The position numbers were made by a program, and so were the translations under genes. A DNA stretch of 64,000 nt from Pelomyxa schiedti (taxonomy: Eukaryota; Protista; Evosea). The notes beneath the pieces are model-generated. The model did not search any database. It saw only the letters and a list, made by a program, of their open reading frames with translations, and had not been told where the DNA came from. The stretch spans positions 80,699 through 144,698 of the forward strand of contig JAHLWZ010000800.1 in the NCBI GenBank assembly GCA_020536535.1. Direction: 5' to 3'. Positions 8,980-39,409 of this stretch are shown here, piece after piece. Within the stretch, counting starts at the first letter, position 1. Each line of letters begins with the position of its first letter.

Positions 8980-11900
8980 ATGGGAATATTTAGCCTCGCT
9001 GTGTGCACTTCTCGTTCTCACAATCAAGAACCAGCAAACAAATTTGCCCCAAACCAACCTAACTGCCACGAAGAAACGCACATCGTCTCTGGGAAAAGTA
9101 GTAGACTTGAACGCAGTGAATAAAGGAGACGAAGTGAGCGTCGTTATTGATGGAGACTCGTTGGTGTATTGGGTATTCACTGAAGCTATTTTTGCTTTGG
9201 GTCCTGATTTTTGGGTCGCTGGCGGACAATATGACACGTGCGTTTGAAAATTTCCTTATTGGTTTTTTTTTGTCTTAGGGGTGAAATATAATCCAATCCT
9301 CCTTATATTGTTTGACTGAACTCAACTGACAAAGATTGCATACGATTATTACACAGTTAGTAAAAGCGTTTGCTAAAAGGAACATTCTTCTTCACGTAAT
9401 TTTCGATGGACCTGTTGTATCCTATGAAAAGGTATTACTCTGGTAGCGGTTTTTTCCAATAACACATTACCATAACAGGAGCTCACATTTAAGACACGAA
9501 GGAGCACTGAAATAAGAGCTGTTTCTAGTGTATGGCGCACTCTTCGTAATTCCATTCCTCTTCAAGCGGGATGCCCTGCAATTCCTCATTTATCAAAGGC
9601 ACTCCCTGTGTTAAGAAGAATTTCACACTTTGACACATGTTAGATGCAAATTTATTGGACCCTGAAAAGCTTAGGTGTGCCGACGTATGTTGCTCTCAGT
9701 GAAGGTGACAGAGATGTTGCACAATATTGCTTTTCGAGGTTAATTATCTTCTTGCATCTTTCCATCTTAATAAGCTAAGGCCAAAGTTACTCTATGGCGT
9801 TATTTCCCAAGTACTTTGCCCCGTTTCAAAGGTTCTCTGACAGTATTCCAGGACTCAGACTACCTTGTTTACAAAATACCCAATTACATCCCTTTTAATA
9901 GCCTGGTTTGTTCTTTCTTTCTCGTTGTATCTCCTCACTTTTTTGATAGAAATTTCATAGTTCTTCGTTGGTATGCAAAGTTATTTCTCCAAAAGAGGTT
10001 TCTGAAAATTACGGCATTCACGTTGATGTATGTAATCAACTTCCAGTGACAATTTCATGTACACCACAAAATAACAGCTACTTCCTGTTTGGGCCTGTAT
10101 GCTTGGAAATGATTACTTTGACCGAATCGCGTATGCCCTGCCCTTTGGTTTTTCTCCTTCATTGTTTATGGTTACAAGATCTCTTGGAATTGTGGGGTCA
10201 AGCCAATTTTTAGAGAAGGCCTGTCACTCTAAGAATCTACACCTCTCACAGAGAGAAATTGAAGAAATTGTTACTGCTGTTGCCAATAATTTCGCCAGTG
10301 GGCACGAAAAAGGTTATTTCAGTTTTATTTCAGACCTGTGGTCACTTGTAAATAGAGGGGTTCAAGCGCAAACTTTTTGCTGCTCTTATGCAGTACTATT
10401 ATGCCTCCAATTTGACAGTGGGAGAAAATGTTATTTCCCTCTACGAGGCGGAAGAGTGTTACCTATCCAAATGCACCCGAAGATTGCCACCAAAAACCCC
10501 TGAAACTGAAACAACACCAGTTAGTGATAGCAATGCGGTATGCGCATCCCCAGAAGGAAAAAATGTACCGTCAGAGGTGAATATTTTGCCTCAAGCTCCT
10601 TCCGAGTGCACTGTGCACTCGCAAGTAGTTGAATCCACCTCCAAGGATCAAACACCCCCAACTACTGTATCAGATTCCGCAGCTAGTCAGAGTACTGTCA
10701 CCAGTGCTCCTGTAATTTCACCATCAAAATCGAAGAAGAAAAAGTCAAAGAAAAAAAAATCAAATATGGACTTCTCATCTCACATAGACACAAAGCAGCA
10801 TGCTCCTCACATGTTGAATGTACCACACGGTAAGTGTGCACTTTCATTTACAATGTTAACATGCTGCAGAAATACTGGAAGTGCTGCCTAATACAATTTA
10901 CCTTAGAAGAACAGTTGAAGCTGCCTGCTTTCAAAGAGTATTTTGTCGTGTACTGAACCACAGTGAACATTCTCGTGTTCCCTCTCCCTGGCTTCTTACC
11001 CGACCTATAAGAAAGCGTCTTTATGGCGTGTTACTGCCACCAACTGGAAGTGTGTCCCTTAAAAAGAATATACCAATTCTCATTACAATGAAAAGAGCCG
11101 GTGGTTGAATGGTCACAGGATGCATCTGTAGAATATTCTTCTGCGTCTGTGCATCCTTATAAAGAAGTTCATGGCACACCTCTACCTCCCATTGGAGATA
11201 TTCTTGTGCTTCAGCCCACTGATTCAAAGCGCTTTTCTCTTTTTTGGTTACTGATGGGAGTCAAGTCCCCAAATGTTTCTATTCCCGGTCCACTTGATAA
11301 TGTGTGGCTCCTATGTGTATGCAGGTGTTACTATGAAAATCTGAGGAGGAAACATTTACCCTAACATGCAGTGTTCTGGTTTGTGCTATTTCATCCCTGT
11401 CGCAACCCCTTCTGTCAGAATGGGAATTTGATGCGTTGGTTTCTTATTTTGTATCACTGCATGAGTCTCCCGAGCCCTCAATTCCCATTACCAATGTCAG
11501 TAAACATGTATTTTAATTCCTCTGATGACACCTAATAGCTTCTGGTACATTTCATGGGTGACTACCAACAAAACGATACAAATCCTACCACCCTAGAAGT
11601 AGTAAGACCACCACACCTCAATGCACCTTTGAATAACAGTGATGATACAAGCAACCAGCACTATCACCACAACCCCCCATCACGCAGACACAAGAAAACC
11701 TCCACCATTCCCGTAGTTCAGCCACCCTACTTATCGTATTGCCTTACGGGGACATACCTTCCACTTCACAAGAAGTATTCACAACGCGATCAGCACCCCA
11801 CGCGGACAGTACTTACGCGAGCAGTTCACCTCCTCAATGTAGTGCAGGTCCTGTGTGACCAATGCTTAGAGATAATTCAACTGTGTTGGGCACCCACGGT

Positions 11901-12325
11901 TGTACCAGGGATGCCCGGACCTCACCAGTTGATCAATGGACTGGCCTGGCAGAAATCCTACCAAGAAAGGCTACTGGCACATTCGCTTGTATGCCACCTT
12001 TTTCTCCTTCACCCTTTTAACAGCTTCTCAGGGGACTGAGGCCGAACTTCCACTCTCAGCTGCCGCAAGAAATATCAAGAACCTAGTTCTCTCCTGCATC
12101 CCACAAGCACCAGTATTCCTACGGTACAGTTCATCAGACTATGATACCACAACTACAACTGCATCAACTTCCACTTCCACTTCAACTACAGCTACCACTT
12201 CTGATGAAGATAGCACAACAATTCAAGAACAAGAGCCCCAGCCCAGCAAACCAGAAGCTGAAGAAACGAACCAGCCGCAATTAGGAGAAACTCCACCCGC
12301 CGATCACTCACCCGAGGAACCTTGA
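8980..12325 (+). CDS. Asteroid/FAM120-like protein with XPG-type PIN nuclease domain
   Basis: MGIFSL start, then VVIDGDSLVY..GGQYD, VIFDG, SEGDRDVAQY, ISQDSDYLVY and CLGNDY, which are the XPG-N/XPG-I acidic motifs. Many introns. Confidence 0.8.
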
Positions 12326-12471
12326 GGCGAAACTTCCTCAGGGTTTGACACCACTTCCCTGCGTGGTCGGATTTGCGTCTGATCCGGGGTTTTGGTTCTT
12401 TCAATCAGACACTCACCCCCAGTTGCTAATTATCGGTACATTTTTTTTCATTTTTTTAATTAAAAACTGGA

Positions 12472-15191
12472 ATGGCAGATCCCGGGTTTCGACGTAGCAG
12501 CGGGCGAGGGGCAAGTAGTGAGTGGTCTTCGACATCTACGTCCGCGTCTGCATCGTCGTCGTCGTCATCATCTTCATCTTTGTCATCTTCGCATGACGAC
12601 GTAATCGCTTTGTCGCGGTAACCTTTGCCGCTCGCACTCGCCAACTTGTGCCACCTTTCTTACGTTCTTTAGAGAAGACGCTGCTTTCATCATCGGAACC
12701 AGTGCTACGTGTAAGTTGAAAATAGAGCGCGTGTCCGGTGCCACTCTTATTCTCGACAATTCTCGCGACAACCCCAGACTTACCATCAAGTACTGCATCT
12801 ACTTCTACCTCAAATACCTACACTTTTTTTGTCTCATTCGGCATGACTTCAACGTTAACAGCATAAATAATAATAAGCAAATCATCATCAACACCATTAA
12901 CTGTGTGTACGTCGTCATCTTCTTTTCTTCGTTTTCTTCCAAGCATTGTCCTTATTAACCAATCACTTCTTCATCACGGCAGTGTCATTTTTACCCTCAC
13001 AAATATGTATCATCATCAACTTTGCCCTAACCTCTTCACCCTCGTACCCCAACATCCATCAGAGGAGATCGTATAGCCCGCCGACGTGCTAGGAAATACG
13101 TTGACCTAATTTGTCAGCAGCGAGTTGGTCTTGTTCACGTTGATCCAGAGAACAACCACGATGACGACCTTACACTTCTTGAGGTACCTTTGGATTGTGT
13201 TGGTTATGTAACAGGTAACGAGTGACATCTCACTACCGAAAATTAATTTAATTAATTTACTTGGCCTTAGGAACCAAAGGGGCAACAATGAGAAAAATAG
13301 AGGAGGAATGGGATATTCTGTTATTTTTCATCACACATCATACCCTCACCAAAGGAAGCAAGGTTGAAACTCTTGCCATTTTTGGTGATCGGCGTGGGAG
13401 GTACACTTCTGTTTCTGTTGTGATAGATTGAATAACAACAATGCAGGAGAGGTGCCGAGTTGAAACTCATGTCAGCAATAGAACAGAAACGGCCGGGACA
13501 CTATACCCATAATGCAAAGGATACCACTTGTGATGATGAATGGGGAACAGAAACTCTGCTGATTCCAGCTACAGCCCTGTCCTACATCCTGGGAAAACGT
13601 GGTTCCACAAAGTGCTGTTCATATTGCATCCCTCTCTTGTTAATTTTCTTTTCTAGGAGGAAGATTGCGCATGCATCGGGTAGCATTATTGAATATGTTG
13701 GCAGTGTGGCTTACCTCTCTGGGTACCGTGCTGAAAGACAGCGTGCACGGGAGTATCTATTGTTGTTGATGGAGCAGCGCCTTGGTCCAGTTCATGTTGA
13801 GACACACAGCACAAGACGTGACTGCACCTATGTGGACATACCGACTGAGTGTGTTGGGTATGTCACAGGTTTGAAGGTTAGTTTCATAATCTGAGTGTTG
13901 TCGTTAACAAAGTGCAGGGTCGTTCTCTCAGGTCAATAGAAGAAAGTACTGACACCTTCTGCTTCATTGATGGTGGCAAGTCAGGCGTACACAGTGATAC
14001 AGAAAGGTTACTTATATTCGGCTTTGTGGAGCGGGGGAGAATGCGTGCTCAAGAAATGGTGATGGAGCTGATTAAACAGAAGCTTACCAATGTACTTTAG
14101 AGTGTCAAAATTGTTTCTTATATAAAATACAGGACAGAGAGGCACGAGGTCAATCCTTGTCTGGCTCGTCTGGAGGTCTCTTACCGGCACCAGTGAACAC
14201 CTCCTATGCAGAAAAACGTATGAGTCCGCTTTCAACTGCACCTCCTCCGTCCAAGTATGCTCGAGTGGATTCACATGAACGGGATGAATACGATCACTCT
14301 TTCTATGGGGCAGACAGCCGAGACCCAAGATTTATCAGGGACAGAGATGTCAGGGACAGCAGAGAGATCAGGGAGAGAGACAGAGATAGAGACAGGTACC
14401 GAGACCGAGACAGAGAGAGGGACAGAGATGTAAGGGATGCCAGAGATATCAGGGAAAGAGACAGAGAAAGAGAGAGGGAAGTTGATGTGAGGAGTACTTA
14501 TGACCCGATTCGGGAGAGAGAATACCGAGAAAGGGAGTACCGAGAGCGTGAGAGAGAAAGAGTTGATCTAGAGCGATTAAGGGAGAGGGAGCATGATAGA
14601 GACAGAGATTTGAGGGTTAGGGAACGAGACTTCAGAGAAAGGGAACGTGAGAGGGAGAGAGACATTGGAAGGGAAAGAGATCGATTATACGAGAGAGGTA
14701 CAGAGAGGGAACGAGAGGAACTGATTGAAGAAAGAAGCAGGGGTTGGGACAGGGAGAGAGACCAAGAGCGAGTAAGAGGCAGACCTGATCTTGAGCTTGA
14801 CCGTGACAATGATCGAGACCGCGACCGTGATCGCGACCGGGAGAATGAGAGACCAGCGGTGATGCCCAGATCCAGGATAGTGGATGTTATGGAGGCTGCA
14901 AGAGAAACTGAGAGGGATAGGCTTGAGAGAGACCGCACTAGCTACAGAGGCGACAGAACCAGCAAAGAGACTGATAAGGATGAAGAGAGGGACTCCTACA
15001 AAACTAACAAGGATGAGGAAGCTGATGCGGAGCACTCGAAAGAACGCAGCACCAGCAATTCTTCACACACCAAAGTCAAGGACGAAAGTGTCTACACACC
15101 CCCTGAGGATGTATCTCTAGTGAACAACTACACAACAGAGGACACACCACACCCAGCCACAGCCCCACCTCGCCCCAACGATCAGCCTTAA
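12472..15191 (+). CDS. Multi-KH-domain RNA-binding protein with RE/RD-rich C-terminus
   Basis: KH GxxG-type motifs AAFIIGTSATCKLKIERVSGA, LSYILGKRGSTK..IAHASG and VGYVTGLKGRSLRSIEE. Long RERDRD low-complexity tail at 14300-14950. Confidence 0.8.
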
Positions 15192-33620: not shown

Positions 33621-36370
33621 ATGTCTACAGGGGCGGTAAACCGGGTGGTGATAGTGGGTGGAGTTGCAGGTGGTGCTTCCGCTGCTGCGAGGCTTAGGAG
33701 GGTCAACACTGAATGCAGCGTCATTCTCTTTGAGAGGGGGGAATACGTGAGGTGACTGTCAAACTGCATCCCTTGTTTCTCCTGGGTTTTTTTTTTTTTT
33801 TTTGGCTCACACGGGTGCACTGTTTTCCAGTTTTGCAAATTGCGGTATGCCATACCACATTGGCGGCACAATCAAAGAGCGGGACAGGCTGCTGTTAGTT
33901 TCACCTGATACTTTGCGCCGGTTCCTTCCTAATTTAGATTTTTTCCCTTTGTTTTGTTTCTCCCATCGCCCACTAAATTTCTTTTCTGCACACAGACGGT
34001 TCGACATCGATGTTAGGATACGCACTGAAGTTATTTCCATTGATGCAGAGCGAAAAGAAATCCTGGCTAGAGCTCTCACAACGGGAGTTGAAGGTCAAAA
34101 AGCTCCCGTGGAAGCTTCTTGTTCTGACATTTTCTAGAGCGGGTTCCCTATGATGCCTTGATATTGAGTCCAGGCGCATCACCAGTGAAACCACCTATTC
34201 CAGGAATTGACCACCCCCGCGTCAGAGTTCTTAGGGATATCAGCACAATGGACTCTATGAAAACTTTAGTAGACGCAGAAGTCAATAAGACAATGCAAGC
34301 TTTCTTTGACTTTATTTCCATTTTCTCACTGAGCCTAGACCTCGCCCAATTCTCATTCTTGGAGGTGGATATATTGGCTTGGAAGTGGCTGAAGCTATCA
34401 TTCACAGAAAACTTCCTTGCATTTTAGTGGAATTCTCCAATCAGGTACTCTTTAATAATCTGTACCAAGGTCCTTTTAAAAATATTTACAGGTTATGGGT
34501 CCAATTGACCCTGAAATGAGTTATCCTCTACATCAAGAGTTGAATGCAAATAATGTGGACCTTAGGTTGGGCTGCACTGTTTCAAAATTCGTGGGCACCG
34601 ACACGGTACTCTTCTTTAGCAGCACCACCCCTAATACATTTTCAGTCTGTTCTCTGCACTCTCACAACAGGGGAGGAAATAGAATGTGCATTTGCTGTTG
34701 TTGCAATTGGTGTTCGTCCAGAGACTGAACTTGCCAAGACTGCTGGTTTATAATAGCCTTGTGTTTAAGCACTTGACCTTTTCAAGGTTTATCAATCGGC
34801 CAACGTGGAGGCATACTTGTGGACGAGTTCTTGCAAACATCCAACCCATCAATCTATGCAGTTGGTGACGCAGTTGAAGTACCTTGTTTCTTAGTGTCTT
34901 CATATTATGTTTACTTGTATTAGGTCCAAGACTTTGTTACAGGGACACAAGCACATATTCCACTTGCTGGACCTGCAAATAGACAAGGTCGAATAGTGGC
35001 AACGAACTTGTTTTGTAAAAATCCCAAGTTCAAGCTTTCTTACAAAAAGACTCAAGTACTGTATATGTAGTCTCTTGAAATTACTCACTTGTCGTAGGGA
35101 ACAGCTGTGTGTAAAGTCTTTGATTTGACTGTTGCAATGACTGGCGCAAACGAGAAACTTCTCAAAAGATTAAACAAACCATACAATAAAGTCTATCTAC
35201 ATTCAATGAGTCATGCCTCTTATTATCCCGGTTGTTAAGGTTTCATCTATAGGAAATTTAACAACACTTAAGGGGCACAATTGATGTGCATTAAACTGAT
35301 CTATGACCCGGAATCAATGAAAATTTTGGGGGCACAAGCCGTTGGCAAAGAAGGTCAGCTGAAGGTGCAATTAATGTGATTTATGAAGAAAACAGGAGTC
35401 GAGAAAAGAATTGACGTAATTGCTGTGGCACTTCGTGGAGGTTTGACTATTAATGACCTGGAAGATCTCGAGCTATGCTACGCACCTCCTTATGGAAGCG
35501 CAAAGGACCCCGTTAATATGGCTGGTTTCATTGCCTCTAATCTCGAACGTGGAATGTTCCGACAATGCTTTGCGGAGGACCTGCACAAAAAGTTGTCTGA
35601 TGGTGGGTCTGATCTTCCATTTATTCTGGATGTAAGAGAGCCGGAGGTAGGAACAACCGTCGCCAAAGATGTTCGATGTTCTTATATTTCCAACAGGAAA
35701 CTACGCAAAAAATACCTCAGTCAATTAATATTCCTCTGGCCCAAGTTGTATCCCGTCTACATGAAATTCCTAAGGATAGACCCATTGTCGTTACATGTGC
35801 ATCAGGTCTACGTTCCTACAATGCTACCATGACACTACTTCACAATGGATATAATGCCCAAAATCTTAGTGGAGGGTTTAAGATTTGGAGTTGGGTGACT
35901 GGAAATGATCCAAAGAAATGGGTTAGCTCTTTTTCTTACCTTACTGTGGTGCTTATTTCTCCTTCAGATAAAACCCATTTCCTTGCCACCCCCTTCTTGT
36001 CAAGCAACCACTTCATGTCAAGCAACGTCTTCATGTACCACTGTCTCCCCTTCTGGTGCACTTGATGTTGCAAAGGAGGTTCGTTGCATACTTTGCAAAC
36101 TACACATTTCACATATTTTTTTTTCAGGTTGATGCCATGTGTATGGCGTGCCCTGGGCCCATAGTCAGACTTGCAAAAGCCATGAATGATGTAAAGGAAG
36201 GAGAAGTTGTGAGACTACGTGCGGGTGACAGAGGGTTCGCACAAGACATTGTTGGCTGGTGTAAGAGTACTTCCAACACCCTTGTCAAAATGGACACAGA
36301 GGAAAAGCCGGAGTACTGTGTAACAGTCTTAATTCGGAAAGGGACTGCCACCAAGTCCTCATCCAGTTGA
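33621..36370 (+). CDS. CoA-disulfide/persulfide reductase fused to rhodanese and TusA/SirA domains
   Basis: [29 protein letters not shown] (redox Cys), [47 protein letters not shown]. Rhodanese [15 protein letters not shown]. Tus[26 protein letters not shown]. Numerous introns. Confidence 0.93.
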
Positions 36371-36429
36371 AAAAAATAGTTCTTTTTTTTTTTTTTTTAC
36401 AAATAAAAAGAGATAGTAACTTGTTGTCA

Positions 36430-38274
36430 TTATGAATCGTGTGGTGTGGTTGTGGTACTGCTGTGATTGTGCAATGTGCAGCCCTGAAGTTCACTATCAG
36501 CCAACTTCTGCTCCATTATGTGCAGAATTTCCTCGTCCATGTGCCTCATTCCCAGGCATGCAACTTTGCCCAGGTTCACAAGTGATGTAATTCCACTCGC
36601 GCCAACAATTCCATCAGAAGATGGAATTCCGATTCCGCTCATGGCGAGATGTACAGCTCGGAATGCCGCATCCACAGCAGTCATGGCTTTGAGGGCGCAA
36701 CCCATCTTGGCACCATCACATATCTGATGATTTGTAAGTGTTTCATGTAAAGTCCAGAGGGGAGTTCATACCATTCCAGCAACATTTCCCACCATGTTGT
36801 TGCATGCGAGTGATAATTCCCTTTCTCCACCATTGTTCATCATAACTAAACCAGCAGCCAAACCGATTCCAGCAGCGTTATTACAGCCACATATAGCTGA
36901 GAGGGTTCCCAGGTGTGCAGTAGTGAGTGAGGTTACCAGGCAGGCCATAGCTAGTGACTCCTCAATGAGGTTTTGGGGAATCCCTAGGTGCCTTCCTACG
37001 ATGTTCAAAGGTACACTAGATGTTATTCCCTACTCATGAATTAGTCCCCAGACAACTGACGGACCATACTTTATTCCCAGAACCAGCGAGACAGTAAACT
37101 TTGCAAGCGGTGCCGCACATACGGGCATGCACACCTAAGTGGGTGAGGGGTTGGAAATTGAATAAGAAAACAAACCATGAAATACAGTGATGGCCGCTCT
37201 AGAGTAGGCATCCGATGAACTAGCGGGATTCAGTGTTTCGCGGAATCCCTTCATTCCTTCCGCACAGATTGCAAGGTTGCACTAGGCAAGACTCAGAAAC
37301 TATGTAGGGGAAAAAAAGAAAAAAAAGAAAGAAAGAAAAAAGCCGTACTTCACTTCCAAGTCGAATCATTTCTCTATCCTCGGGAGTAATACTTCGGGCC
37401 AGACGGAATAACTCGGTGAAACTCATTTTACACAACCTGTCATAGATGGAGATGCGCTTCGGGGTTGCTTCCTTGCCTGAAGGCTCCGTCGTAGATAATG
37501 GGGAGGGAGATTCTCCATTGAGTAAGGCATCAACATTTACTGGAACACCATCCCTCGCCACCAATGTTACATTTGTATGGTGCTGAGTAATTACACATCT
37601 CCCTTTCACCGCTGGTGCTCTAGTAACGGTACAATCCACCAGTAAGTCTGTGTCAGCTTCAACATCCTTGCGAACGGTGACGTGCACACGATTGTGTGTC
37701 ATAAGGAATGTGGCATGGGCTAAAACAGCTTCATCTGTGGCACTGAAGCACTCTAGCTTCAAATTTCGCCTTATGGCTTCATGCGTGAATGAAGCTCCAA
37801 TAGCAACAGCCCACTATAATATCTCAATCAAGATATAGCATAAAATTAGGTACTAGACGAGAAAAAGAAACAGGAGTGGTACTTGTATTCCTGTTTTGCT
37901 TTGTGAGTGCGGAATTCCAACAGCATAGCAGTTCTTGTACATCCTTGGATCACATAGCAAAGTAACATCCACCACTTCACCATCACCAGCAGCAAGACTA
38001 GCCAATGAGCACCCATAAGCTATCCAGGCAAAAATAGATTGACTCATAAGCTACATTCAAAAGGGGCCAAAAAAAAAAAAAAAAAAAGCCAAAGAACCAA
38101 AAAAACCCAGACAAAAAAAAGCAGCCTCCAAAGAGCCAAAAAACGAAAAGTACCAATACTTGCAGGTTCAGTGCATCCCAGTGTTGGTCGCCACTCTTGT
38201 TTGAGGTACTCGCTAAATGTGAGCTCCTGTGGATCGCTTGCCGACGACGTTGGGGGTGGGGCAGTGGTGGCCAT
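36430..38274 (-). CDS. cyuA: L-cysteine desulfidase (YhaM/CyuA/CdsB, UPF0597, Fe-S serine-dehydratase-alpha-like)
   Basis: LKQEWRPTLGCTEPASIAY, MYKNCYAVGIP, HARMCG..AGSGNK, LGTLSAICGC, GMICDGAKMGCALKA, DGIVG..LGMRHMDEEILHIM; spliced. Confidence 0.9.
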
Positions 38275-38552: not shown

Positions 38553-39409
38553 TTATGGCCTGCATTTTGGGCAGACGGGCATGCCATTAAGGGGGTAGAA
38601 TGACTCGTCGGGATTGAGAACTGTGTGGCATGTCACACAGGCAAAGCACTTGGGGTGGAAGGTTACACCAAGCTGCAAGGGGGTGAATTCATTGAAATGG
38701 AAACGCAAAAGCAAAAGAAACATACAGCTTCGACCCCTTCTTCAGAAAGTTCCACTTTCAACTTCTCGTGACATACATGGCATTCCTTGGAGAACTTGGC
38801 ATTGTAGTCATCAGCACAGTACCAGGCGTTATCTACTGTCCAGAACTTGATTCCGGGGAGTGGCTTCTTGCATGTAGCACACACGAAGCATGCATTGTGG
38901 TATCCTTTGCCCTGCAGAAATTACAGAGTAAGTGGATGAAAGTTTCCTTTGTACACTTACAGAGAATGTGGCCCAGGAGCTCTCGGTAATTGGTTGTGAG
39001 CAAACAGGGCAAGGGTCCGTAGGCTTCTTTGGAGCCGTCGCTCCGTGGCATTCGTTGCACCACGCTCCATCACTACAAATATTGTCACAGTAAGTAATAT
39101 GCATTTTATTTTCAAAAATAATGGCGGTTAGAGGGCGTTATTGTGTATATTTTTGAGAGTTGAGCGGCATACGGGTGCTTGTAGAATGAACCAACAAGTT
39201 CTTTATTGCAGTGAACGCATTTCCAGCACGCCTTGTGGTACTTCTTGCTCATAGCAGTAAGAATAGTGTCGGTCTTGGCAATGGGCTTGTTGCATCCGGC
39301 GCAAACGACTTCAACAGCGGGATCTGGCCATTAAAAATACACAAGCGTTAGATCGTTTTTGTTTATATTTGCCTTGTGGGTGTTAACCGAGGTGTCACCA
39401 ACCTGCCAT
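38553..39409 (-). CDS. Three-LIM-domain protein
   Basis: CAGCNKPI..YHKACWKCVHC, CPVCSQPI..MHASCFVCATC..YCADDY, and CHVCHEKL..FHPKCFACVTC..PVCPKC. Confidence 0.9.

Follow-up and report, generated by a model that had tools for sequence, protein, structure and literature searches.

We analyzed a 64,000-nucleotide stretch of the genome of the anaerobic amoeba Pelomyxa schiedti (assembly GCA_020536535.1, contig JAHLWZ010000800.1, positions 80,699 to 144,698; hereafter the window, whose numbering is used unless another contig is named). It carries two convergent, intron-rich genes of bacterial type, here called g1 and g2. g1 encodes a CoA-disulfide reductase (CoADR)-type flavoprotein fused to a rhodanese and a TusA domain, whereas the product of g2 is, to judge from its sequence and predicted structure, most likely a CyuA-type [4Fe-4S] L-cysteine desulfidase. 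A preliminary description of the window had recognized both genes and had proposed that they form one laterally acquired sulfur module. The features of the locus are as follows.

33621-36370, + strand: g1, CoADR-rhodanese-TusA fusion, 15 exons, 687 aa (basis: splice joints in RNA, open frame, Pfam)
33621-33751, 33831-33920, 33996-34093, 34138-34294, 34339-34444, 34492-34605, 34646-34745, 34787-34878, + strand: g1 exons 1-8
34924-35055, 35098-35230, 35273-35353, 35396-35646, 35697-35921, 35968-36078, 36128-36370, + strand: g1 exons 9-15
33621-35526, + strand: CoA-disulfide-reductase-type flavoprotein part of g1, residues 1-455, with the codon of redox Cys48 at 33841-33843
35569-35982, + strand: rhodanese domain of g1, residues 470-575, with the codon of catalytic Cys529 at 35796-35798 (Pfam Rhodanese, E = 1.7e-10)
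36131-36367, + strand: TusA domain of g1, residues 609-687, with the codon of Cys615 at 36149-36151 (Pfam TusA, E = 1e-15)
36371-36429, no strand: spacer of 59 bp with many T/A runs, separating the convergent stop codons (basis: sequence)
36430-38274, - strand: g2, putative CyuA-type L-cysteine desulfidase, 7 exons, 481 aa (basis: gene model, RNA, Pfam, PDB match)
38274-38154, 38019-37883, 37813-37349, 37281-37176, 37134-37070, 37029-36772, 36723-36430, - strand: g2 exons
38167-38175, - strand: codons of the g2 Cys34/Glu36 dyad, aligned to Cys23/Glu25 of Methanococcus maripaludis CyuA
36697-36891, - strand: codons of the predicted [4Fe-4S] ligands of g2, Cys345, Cys386 and Cys393, and of the extra Cys347

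The genes lie tail-to-tail, g1 on the + strand and g2 on the - strand (38274-36430), and the gap of about 60 bp that the preliminary description had placed between their stop codons measures 59 bp. RNA evidence came from a single study, as contigs of three single-cell transcriptome runs; the contigs of g1 stop at 36364-36368, and those of g2 start at 36414-36431. A total of 20 spliceosomal introns interrupt the two genes. Introns at the locus are 40-134 bp long and have a G+C content of 0.36, and the coding G+C of g1 and g2 is 0.46-0.49, compared to 0.45 for the window. The stretch is nuclear DNA of P. schiedti. Bacterial contamination or mis-assembly might be suspected from the bacterial type of both proteins, but introns, spliced transcripts, eukaryotic flanking genes and host-like G+C, on a 144.7-kb contig annotated as P. 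schiedti in GenBank, together exclude it for all practical purposes. As for the surroundings, an exon encoding a LIM domain (38663-38884, - strand) belongs to the right-hand neighbor of g2; to the left of g1, the open reading frames at 31-33 kb had no Pfam match. In Pfam searches the spliced models were scanned one exon at a time. Joined models, built from coordinates, were used for local comparison, for intron mapping and for trees on fetched sequences.

The g1 gene starts with the ATG at 33621 and ends with the TGA at 36368-36370. Joining its exons produces an open frame of 687 codons, and every one of its introns (14/14) was seen as a splice joint in RNA contigs. Thirteen introns have GT..AG boundaries and one has GC..AG; on the latter, intron 4 (34295-34338), RNA contigs from three runs agree. 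Exons 1-11 matched Pfam Pyr_redox_2, Pyr_redox and Pyr_redox_dim, with an additional NCBIfam match to the C-terminus of CoA-disulfide reductase, and the flavoprotein part keeps 151 of the 171 positions that do not vary among 20 bacterial homologues, Cys48 included. This is the makeup of a class I pyridine-nucleotide disulfide oxidoreductase, which has FAD and NAD(P)H folds and one redox cysteine within a conserved N-terminal motif. Exon 12, which spans the junction between flavoprotein and rhodanese, matched three solved structures (PDB 3icr, 8a56 and 3nta, E = 1e-16 to 1e-17). The protein ends after TusA and has no DsrE-like (DrsE_2) domain. Along its whole length it retains 179 of 208 residues invariant in 20 four-domain bacterial proteins, among them Cys48, Cys529 and Cys615. 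The intron-rich fusion named in the preliminary description is thus confirmed by 15 exons, RNA-supported introns and Pfam domains, and the motifs quoted for it (SFANC, CASGLRS and CPGP) are all present in frame.

Among characterized enzymes, g1 most resembles the group known as Npsr, CoADR-RHD or CoA-persulfide reductase (3nta from Shewanella, 3icr from Bacillus anthracis, and 8a56), in which a CoADR flavoprotein with a single redox cysteine is likewise followed by a rhodanese domain with a cysteine. Npsr enzymes use NADH to reduce persulfides and polysulfide, but not disulfides, and make use of tightly bound coenzyme A (CoA) and the rhodanese cysteine (PMC7969121). Sequence comparison therefore suggests that g1 is most likely an NAD(P)H-dependent persulfide/polysulfide reductase of this type. 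It differs from these enzymes in adding TusA after the rhodanese, and its nearest kin are proteins of about 820 aa with four domains rather than the enzymes of about 570 aa.

These closest full-length relatives form a large family of bacterial CoADR-Rhd-TusA-DsrE proteins (for example P0217), which are 50-52% identical to g1 along the whole of g1, that is, over the three domains in common. In the g1 tree, g1 and a paralogue described below, g1b, form a clade (support 100) that nests within a clade of Planctomycetota, Verrucomicrobiota, Omnitrophota and Armatimonadota (support 99); taxon labels in our trees were taken from bin titles. On sequence grounds, g1 is a bacterial acquisition and a truncated derivative, by descent, of the four-domain family, from whose bacterial members it differs by the missing DsrE-like domain, its 14 introns and the absence of an ArsR partner. 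When exon 12 was compared to a representative protein library clustered at 50% identity, the relatives recovered were at most 58% identical over at least 200 residues, and the P. schiedti protein itself was not among them. None of ten of the most similar matches came from a eukaryote, in a library whose collapse at 50% identity leaves room for eukaryotic g1 genes elsewhere. The Rhd-TusA-DsrE arm of the family is similar to CstA, a multidomain sulfurtransferase from Staphylococcus aureus.

The bacterial neighborhoods of g1-type genes (loci L005-L084) offered one recurrent feature: an ArsR-type helix-turn-helix regulator lies directly upstream in approximately 24 of 69 loci. The same scan disclosed no conserved partner downstream. 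Some persulfide-sensing repressors belong to the ArsR family, and the regulator may be taken as a hint, though only a hint, that the bacterial g1-type proteins handle reactive sulfur.

A second gene of this kind is present elsewhere in the genome.

Contig C1019, approximately 10658-14358 (locus L138:1658-5358), - strand: g1b, homology-built model, 16 exons, about 966 aa

Its product comprises CoADR, rhodanese, two TusA domains and a DsrE-like domain; compared to the bacterial four-domain fusions it thus keeps DsrE but has a second TusA. g1 and g1b are 61% identical, have derived substitutions in common at otherwise invariant positions, and place 9 of the 14 g1 introns at the same codon and in the same phase. 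Since intron positions and phases agree to this extent, the gene duplicated inside the eukaryote. TusA occurs in three copies in the whole assembly, one in g1 and two in g1b, and DrsE_2 only in g1b. The simplest history consistent with these observations is a single transfer of a four-domain gene, followed by intron gain and by duplication within the amoeba lineage, after which the DsrE-like domain was lost in g1 and the second TusA was gained in g1b. No neighbor of g1b gave an informative Pfam match, and no recognizable sulfur gene was seen among them.

The g2 gene runs from the ATG at 38274-38272 to the stop codon at 36432-36430 on the - strand, and spliced RNA contigs span 36414-37813. Introns 3-6 were placed by frame enumeration, intron 2 by RNA (with a 9-letter loose end) and intron 1 by homology; the resulting model is identical to the P. 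schiedti protein KAH3757560.1 (our P0333), which GenBank labels only 'serine dehydratase subunit alpha family protein'. Exons 6 and 7 matched Pfam SDH_alpha, an NCBIfam scan of the exons returned nothing useful, and a Pfam search revealed no SDH_beta domain. When compared to solved structures with phmmer, g2 had a single match, M. maripaludis CyuA (E = 1.3e-25). In that enzyme Cys287, Cys329 and Cys336 bind the cluster, Cys289 is a non-essential fourth cysteine, and a Cys23/Glu25 dyad, absent from related chemotaxis proteins, removes the C-alpha proton (PMC12647591). The g2 residues Cys345, Cys386, Cys393 and Cys347 align to these four cysteines in the order given. Of the six key residues, five do not vary in an alignment of 76 homologues that reaches out to distant Bacillota; the exception is Cys347.

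The predicted structure points the same way. The eight PDB chains closest to an AlphaFold model of g2 (predicted local distance difference test score, pLDDT, 90; predicted template modeling score, pTM, 0.90) all belong to CyuA, with template modeling (TM) scores of 0.77-0.84 on the target and E values down to 5e-20, whereas the Legionella L-serine dehydratase 4rqo reached a TM score of only about 0.5 (E = 1e-5). With the family variously called CyuA, CdsB or YhaM (PDB 9fsl, 9fyi and 9he0; E. coli CyuA), the model has in common a two-domain fold (TM 0.83 to 9he0), the SDH_alpha catalytic domain, three predicted cluster cysteines plus a fourth, the Cys/Glu dyad and the GSGN loop. It departs from the solved enzymes in two short insertions and in 16 extra residues at the N-terminus and about 20 at the C-terminus, and g2 itself is an intron-bearing eukaryotic gene. 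The preliminary identification of an intron-rich L-cysteine desulfidase therefore holds up, with 7 exons, the CyuA residues and CyuA as best PDB match; its quoted motifs (GCTEP, GSGNK, CGC and CDGAK.GC) likewise all occur in frame. Given these residues and this fold, the GenBank label understates what the g2 sequence appears to encode. The genome has no second copy of g2. A canonical Fe-S L-serine dehydratase gene, with SDH_beta followed by SDH_alpha and with introns, lies on another contig (C451:10881-12293, + strand), the only place in the genome where SDH_beta was found.

The best non-self match of g2 among 5.8 billion proteins was a 447-aa protein of Mastigella eilhardi (EukProt EP01105_P016494; 55% identity), which has all six CyuA key residues. 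Within the Archamoebae, Mastigella and Pelomyxa are closely related. The remaining top matches were all bacterial (45-53% identity), and those with named sources came from Acidobacteriota, Myxococcota/Deltaproteobacteria, Planctomycetota and Riflebacteria bins. In the g2 tree, the two amoebae form a clade (SH-like approximate likelihood ratio test, SH-aLRT, support 99) within a 54-row bacterial subfamily (support 100), adjoining an unlabelled metagenome protein. This subfamily, drawn mainly from metagenome bins of Acidobacteriota, Myxococcota, Planctomycetota and Riflebacteria, is separate from that of the solved CyuA enzymes. Its sequence marks g2 as a bacterial acquisition, and the distribution fits one transfer before the split of Pelomyxa and Mastigella. 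An exact-peptide scan of g2 exon 6 against 185,579 species genomes brought up no relative. One close bacterial relative of g2, on a metagenome contig (L100:8957-10291; JGI20214J51088_10000860), contains one in-frame stop in an otherwise full-length gene; either a sequencing error or recoding of the codon might account for it. The preliminary description was correct in calling both g1 and g2 bacterial-type genes that were laterally acquired and intronised, as their nesting in bacterial clades, their introns and their spliced RNA attest.

Whether the two genes traveled or work as a unit is a separate matter. A CyuA relative was found near a g1-type gene in just 1 of 80 bacterial loci, with flanks of up to 10 kb; this locus belongs to a Clostridia bin, and its CyuA relative, at a distance of 6.5 kb, shares 28% identity with g2. 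Reciprocally, no g1 relative lay within the 10-kb flanks of 22 metagenome loci with g2-type genes, a set that includes the 14 closest known bacterial relatives (45-50% identity), and the neighborhood scan showed no conserved partner around g2-type genes. Among 17 genomes bearing the closest g1 relatives, none has a gene of the g2 subfamily. Four of them do carry a CyuA-family gene, but at only 31-38% identity and never next to the g1 relative; on the single chromosome that is complete, approximately 465 kb lie between the two genes. These counts, and a paralogue g1b with no sulfur neighbor, tell against the proposal of a single acquired or conserved module, and the homologues are not the bacterial neighbors that the preliminary description had suggested looking for. 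On its other question, whether both proteins nest in the same donor clade, the g1 and g2 trees point to different bacterial groups. The adjacency of g1 and g2 was probably not inherited from bacteria.

On balance, we think it probable that g1 and g2 were acquired from bacteria separately, have long been part of the nuclear genome and now lie tail-to-tail, g2 encoding a CyuA-type desulfidase and g1 a persulfide/polysulfide reductase. Several considerations count against this. Two laterally acquired sulfur genes 59 bp apart are unlikely by pure chance (a judgement made post hoc), and a common donor phylum is conceivable, since Planctomycetota and Riflebacteria-like lineages contain members of both bacterial subfamilies. 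The trees of both genes are quick maximum-likelihood searches with SH-aLRT support only, and the g1b model was built from homology rather than RNA, with GT donors only. For g2, a long branch sets its subfamily apart from the Bacillota CyuA rows and from biochemically studied CyuA, and our literature search found no enzyme assay of any subfamily member. These last two points, along with the 21-22% identity to the solved enzyme and the GenBank name, are also what would speak for a g2 protein that is not a cysteine desulfidase at all, acting instead on serine, another beta-substituted amino acid or selenocysteine, or serving as sulfur donor for Fe-S assembly or tRNA thiolation. Such a role appears rather improbable: the Cys/Glu dyad is invariant, the match of the model to CyuA is far better than that to serine dehydratase, g2 lacks the SDH_beta domain that SdaA/SdaB-type enzymes have, the genome encodes a canonical serine dehydratase separately, and the Joint Genome Institute calls many members of the subfamily L-cysteine desulfidase.

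The remaining alternatives concern the pairing itself. Transfer of both genes together, as a linked pair from one bacterial donor, would suit the Planctomycetota- and Riflebacteria/Ozemobacteraceae-labelled members of both subfamilies; it is nevertheless very unlikely, given that the genomes of the nearest g1 relatives have no g2-subfamily gene and at most distant, unlinked CyuA-family genes, that no g2-type gene has a g1 relative nearby, and that g1 duplicated and its copies diverged without g2. More credit is due to the idea that the eukaryote itself put together a genuine functional module, whose adjacency is kept by selection for co-regulation, although we still regard this as unlikely. 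CyuA would mobilize cysteine sulfur, and the Rhd-TusA-CoADR protein would take up persulfide or sulfane sulfur and reduce it with NAD(P)H. The 59-bp spacing, the chemistry in common, the confinement of the genome's TusA domains to g1 and g1b, and the proposal that CyuA hands on sulfur through a [4Fe-5S] intermediate (PMC12647591) agree with such a module, as does the joint occurrence of g1 and g2 contigs in all three single-cell RNA runs. Contigs, however, cannot measure co-expression or show co-regulation, convergent genes have no shared promoter, linkage is nearly absent from the g1-type and absent from the g2-type bacterial loci, and g1b, with its complete relay, adjoins no sulfur gene. A more elaborate version, which we find doubtful, is an amoeba-built sulfur cluster in which CyuA passes cluster-bound or persulfide sulfur from cysteine to its neighbor's rhodanese-TusA arm, with NAD(P)H-driven release of H2S serving as a redox valve and supplying sulfide to endosymbionts. 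If true, it would couple cysteine fermentation to that valve and provide sulfide for the methanogenic and syntrophic endosymbionts of Pelomyxa. With the two genes taken as separate acquisitions, a loose metabolic link between them is plausible, since both enzymes would touch sulfide and sulfane-sulfur chemistry.

The substrates, cofactors, cytosolic location and physiological role given here for g1 and g2 are those we infer. By analogy with the mechanism described for CyuA (PMC12647591), the thiol of cysteine would bind the free iron of the g2 [4Fe-4S] cluster while Cys34/Glu36 removes the C-alpha proton; sulfide and aminoacrylate would then be released, the latter decaying to pyruvate and ammonium. 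The pyruvate could feed the amoeba's fermentative metabolism of pyruvate:ferredoxin oxidoreductase and hydrogenase, and g2 could also serve to regulate free cysteine. E. coli employs its CyuA in fermenting cysteine (PMC9040844). In g1, the cysteines of the rhodanese and TusA domains would accept sulfane sulfur, which NAD(P)H would then reduce to H2S via the flavin, Cys48 and probably bound CoA. Both proteins would reside in the cytosol, a location suggested solely by N-terminal extensions of no more than 7-16 residues over bacterial relatives. Disposal of NADH onto sulfur and exchange of H2S with symbionts, as the preliminary description envisaged, may be further consequences.

Neither gene points to a new kind of system: g1 and g2 belong clearly to known enzyme families, and laterally transferred genes are a familiar finding in Archamoebae. 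In Mastigamoeba, Pelomyxa and Entamoeba, bacterial enzymes of anaerobic metabolism have likewise become nuclear, intronised and expressed (PMC8136499, PMC8887013). The g1 and g2 families are mentioned in neither of these papers and in none of the Pelomyxa genome, consortium and Mastigamoeba genome papers. The published survey of CyuA covered prokaryotic proteomes only (PMC12647591). Within the library of papers searched, pairing 'cysteine desulfidase' or g1-type reductases with a set of amoeba and protist names found nothing beyond one paper on a Mycoplasma endosymbiont of Trichomonas that contains both 'cysteine desulfidase' and 'protist'.

Together, these results indicate that CyuA, until now surveyed only in prokaryotes, exists in pelomyxid amoebae of two genera as a nuclear gene that is conserved and expressed, and that it has stood there under a 'serine dehydratase' label. 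The g2 enzyme would give these anaerobes a route from cysteine to pyruvate and sulfide that is independent of pyridoxal phosphate, an activity that would bear on energy metabolism, on thiol balance and possibly on the sulfur supply of endosymbionts. g1 and g1b provide a clean example of a transferred multidomain bacterial gene that gained introns, duplicated and lost a domain within a eukaryote. With g2, they add to the catalogue of transfers that have shaped anaerobic protists.

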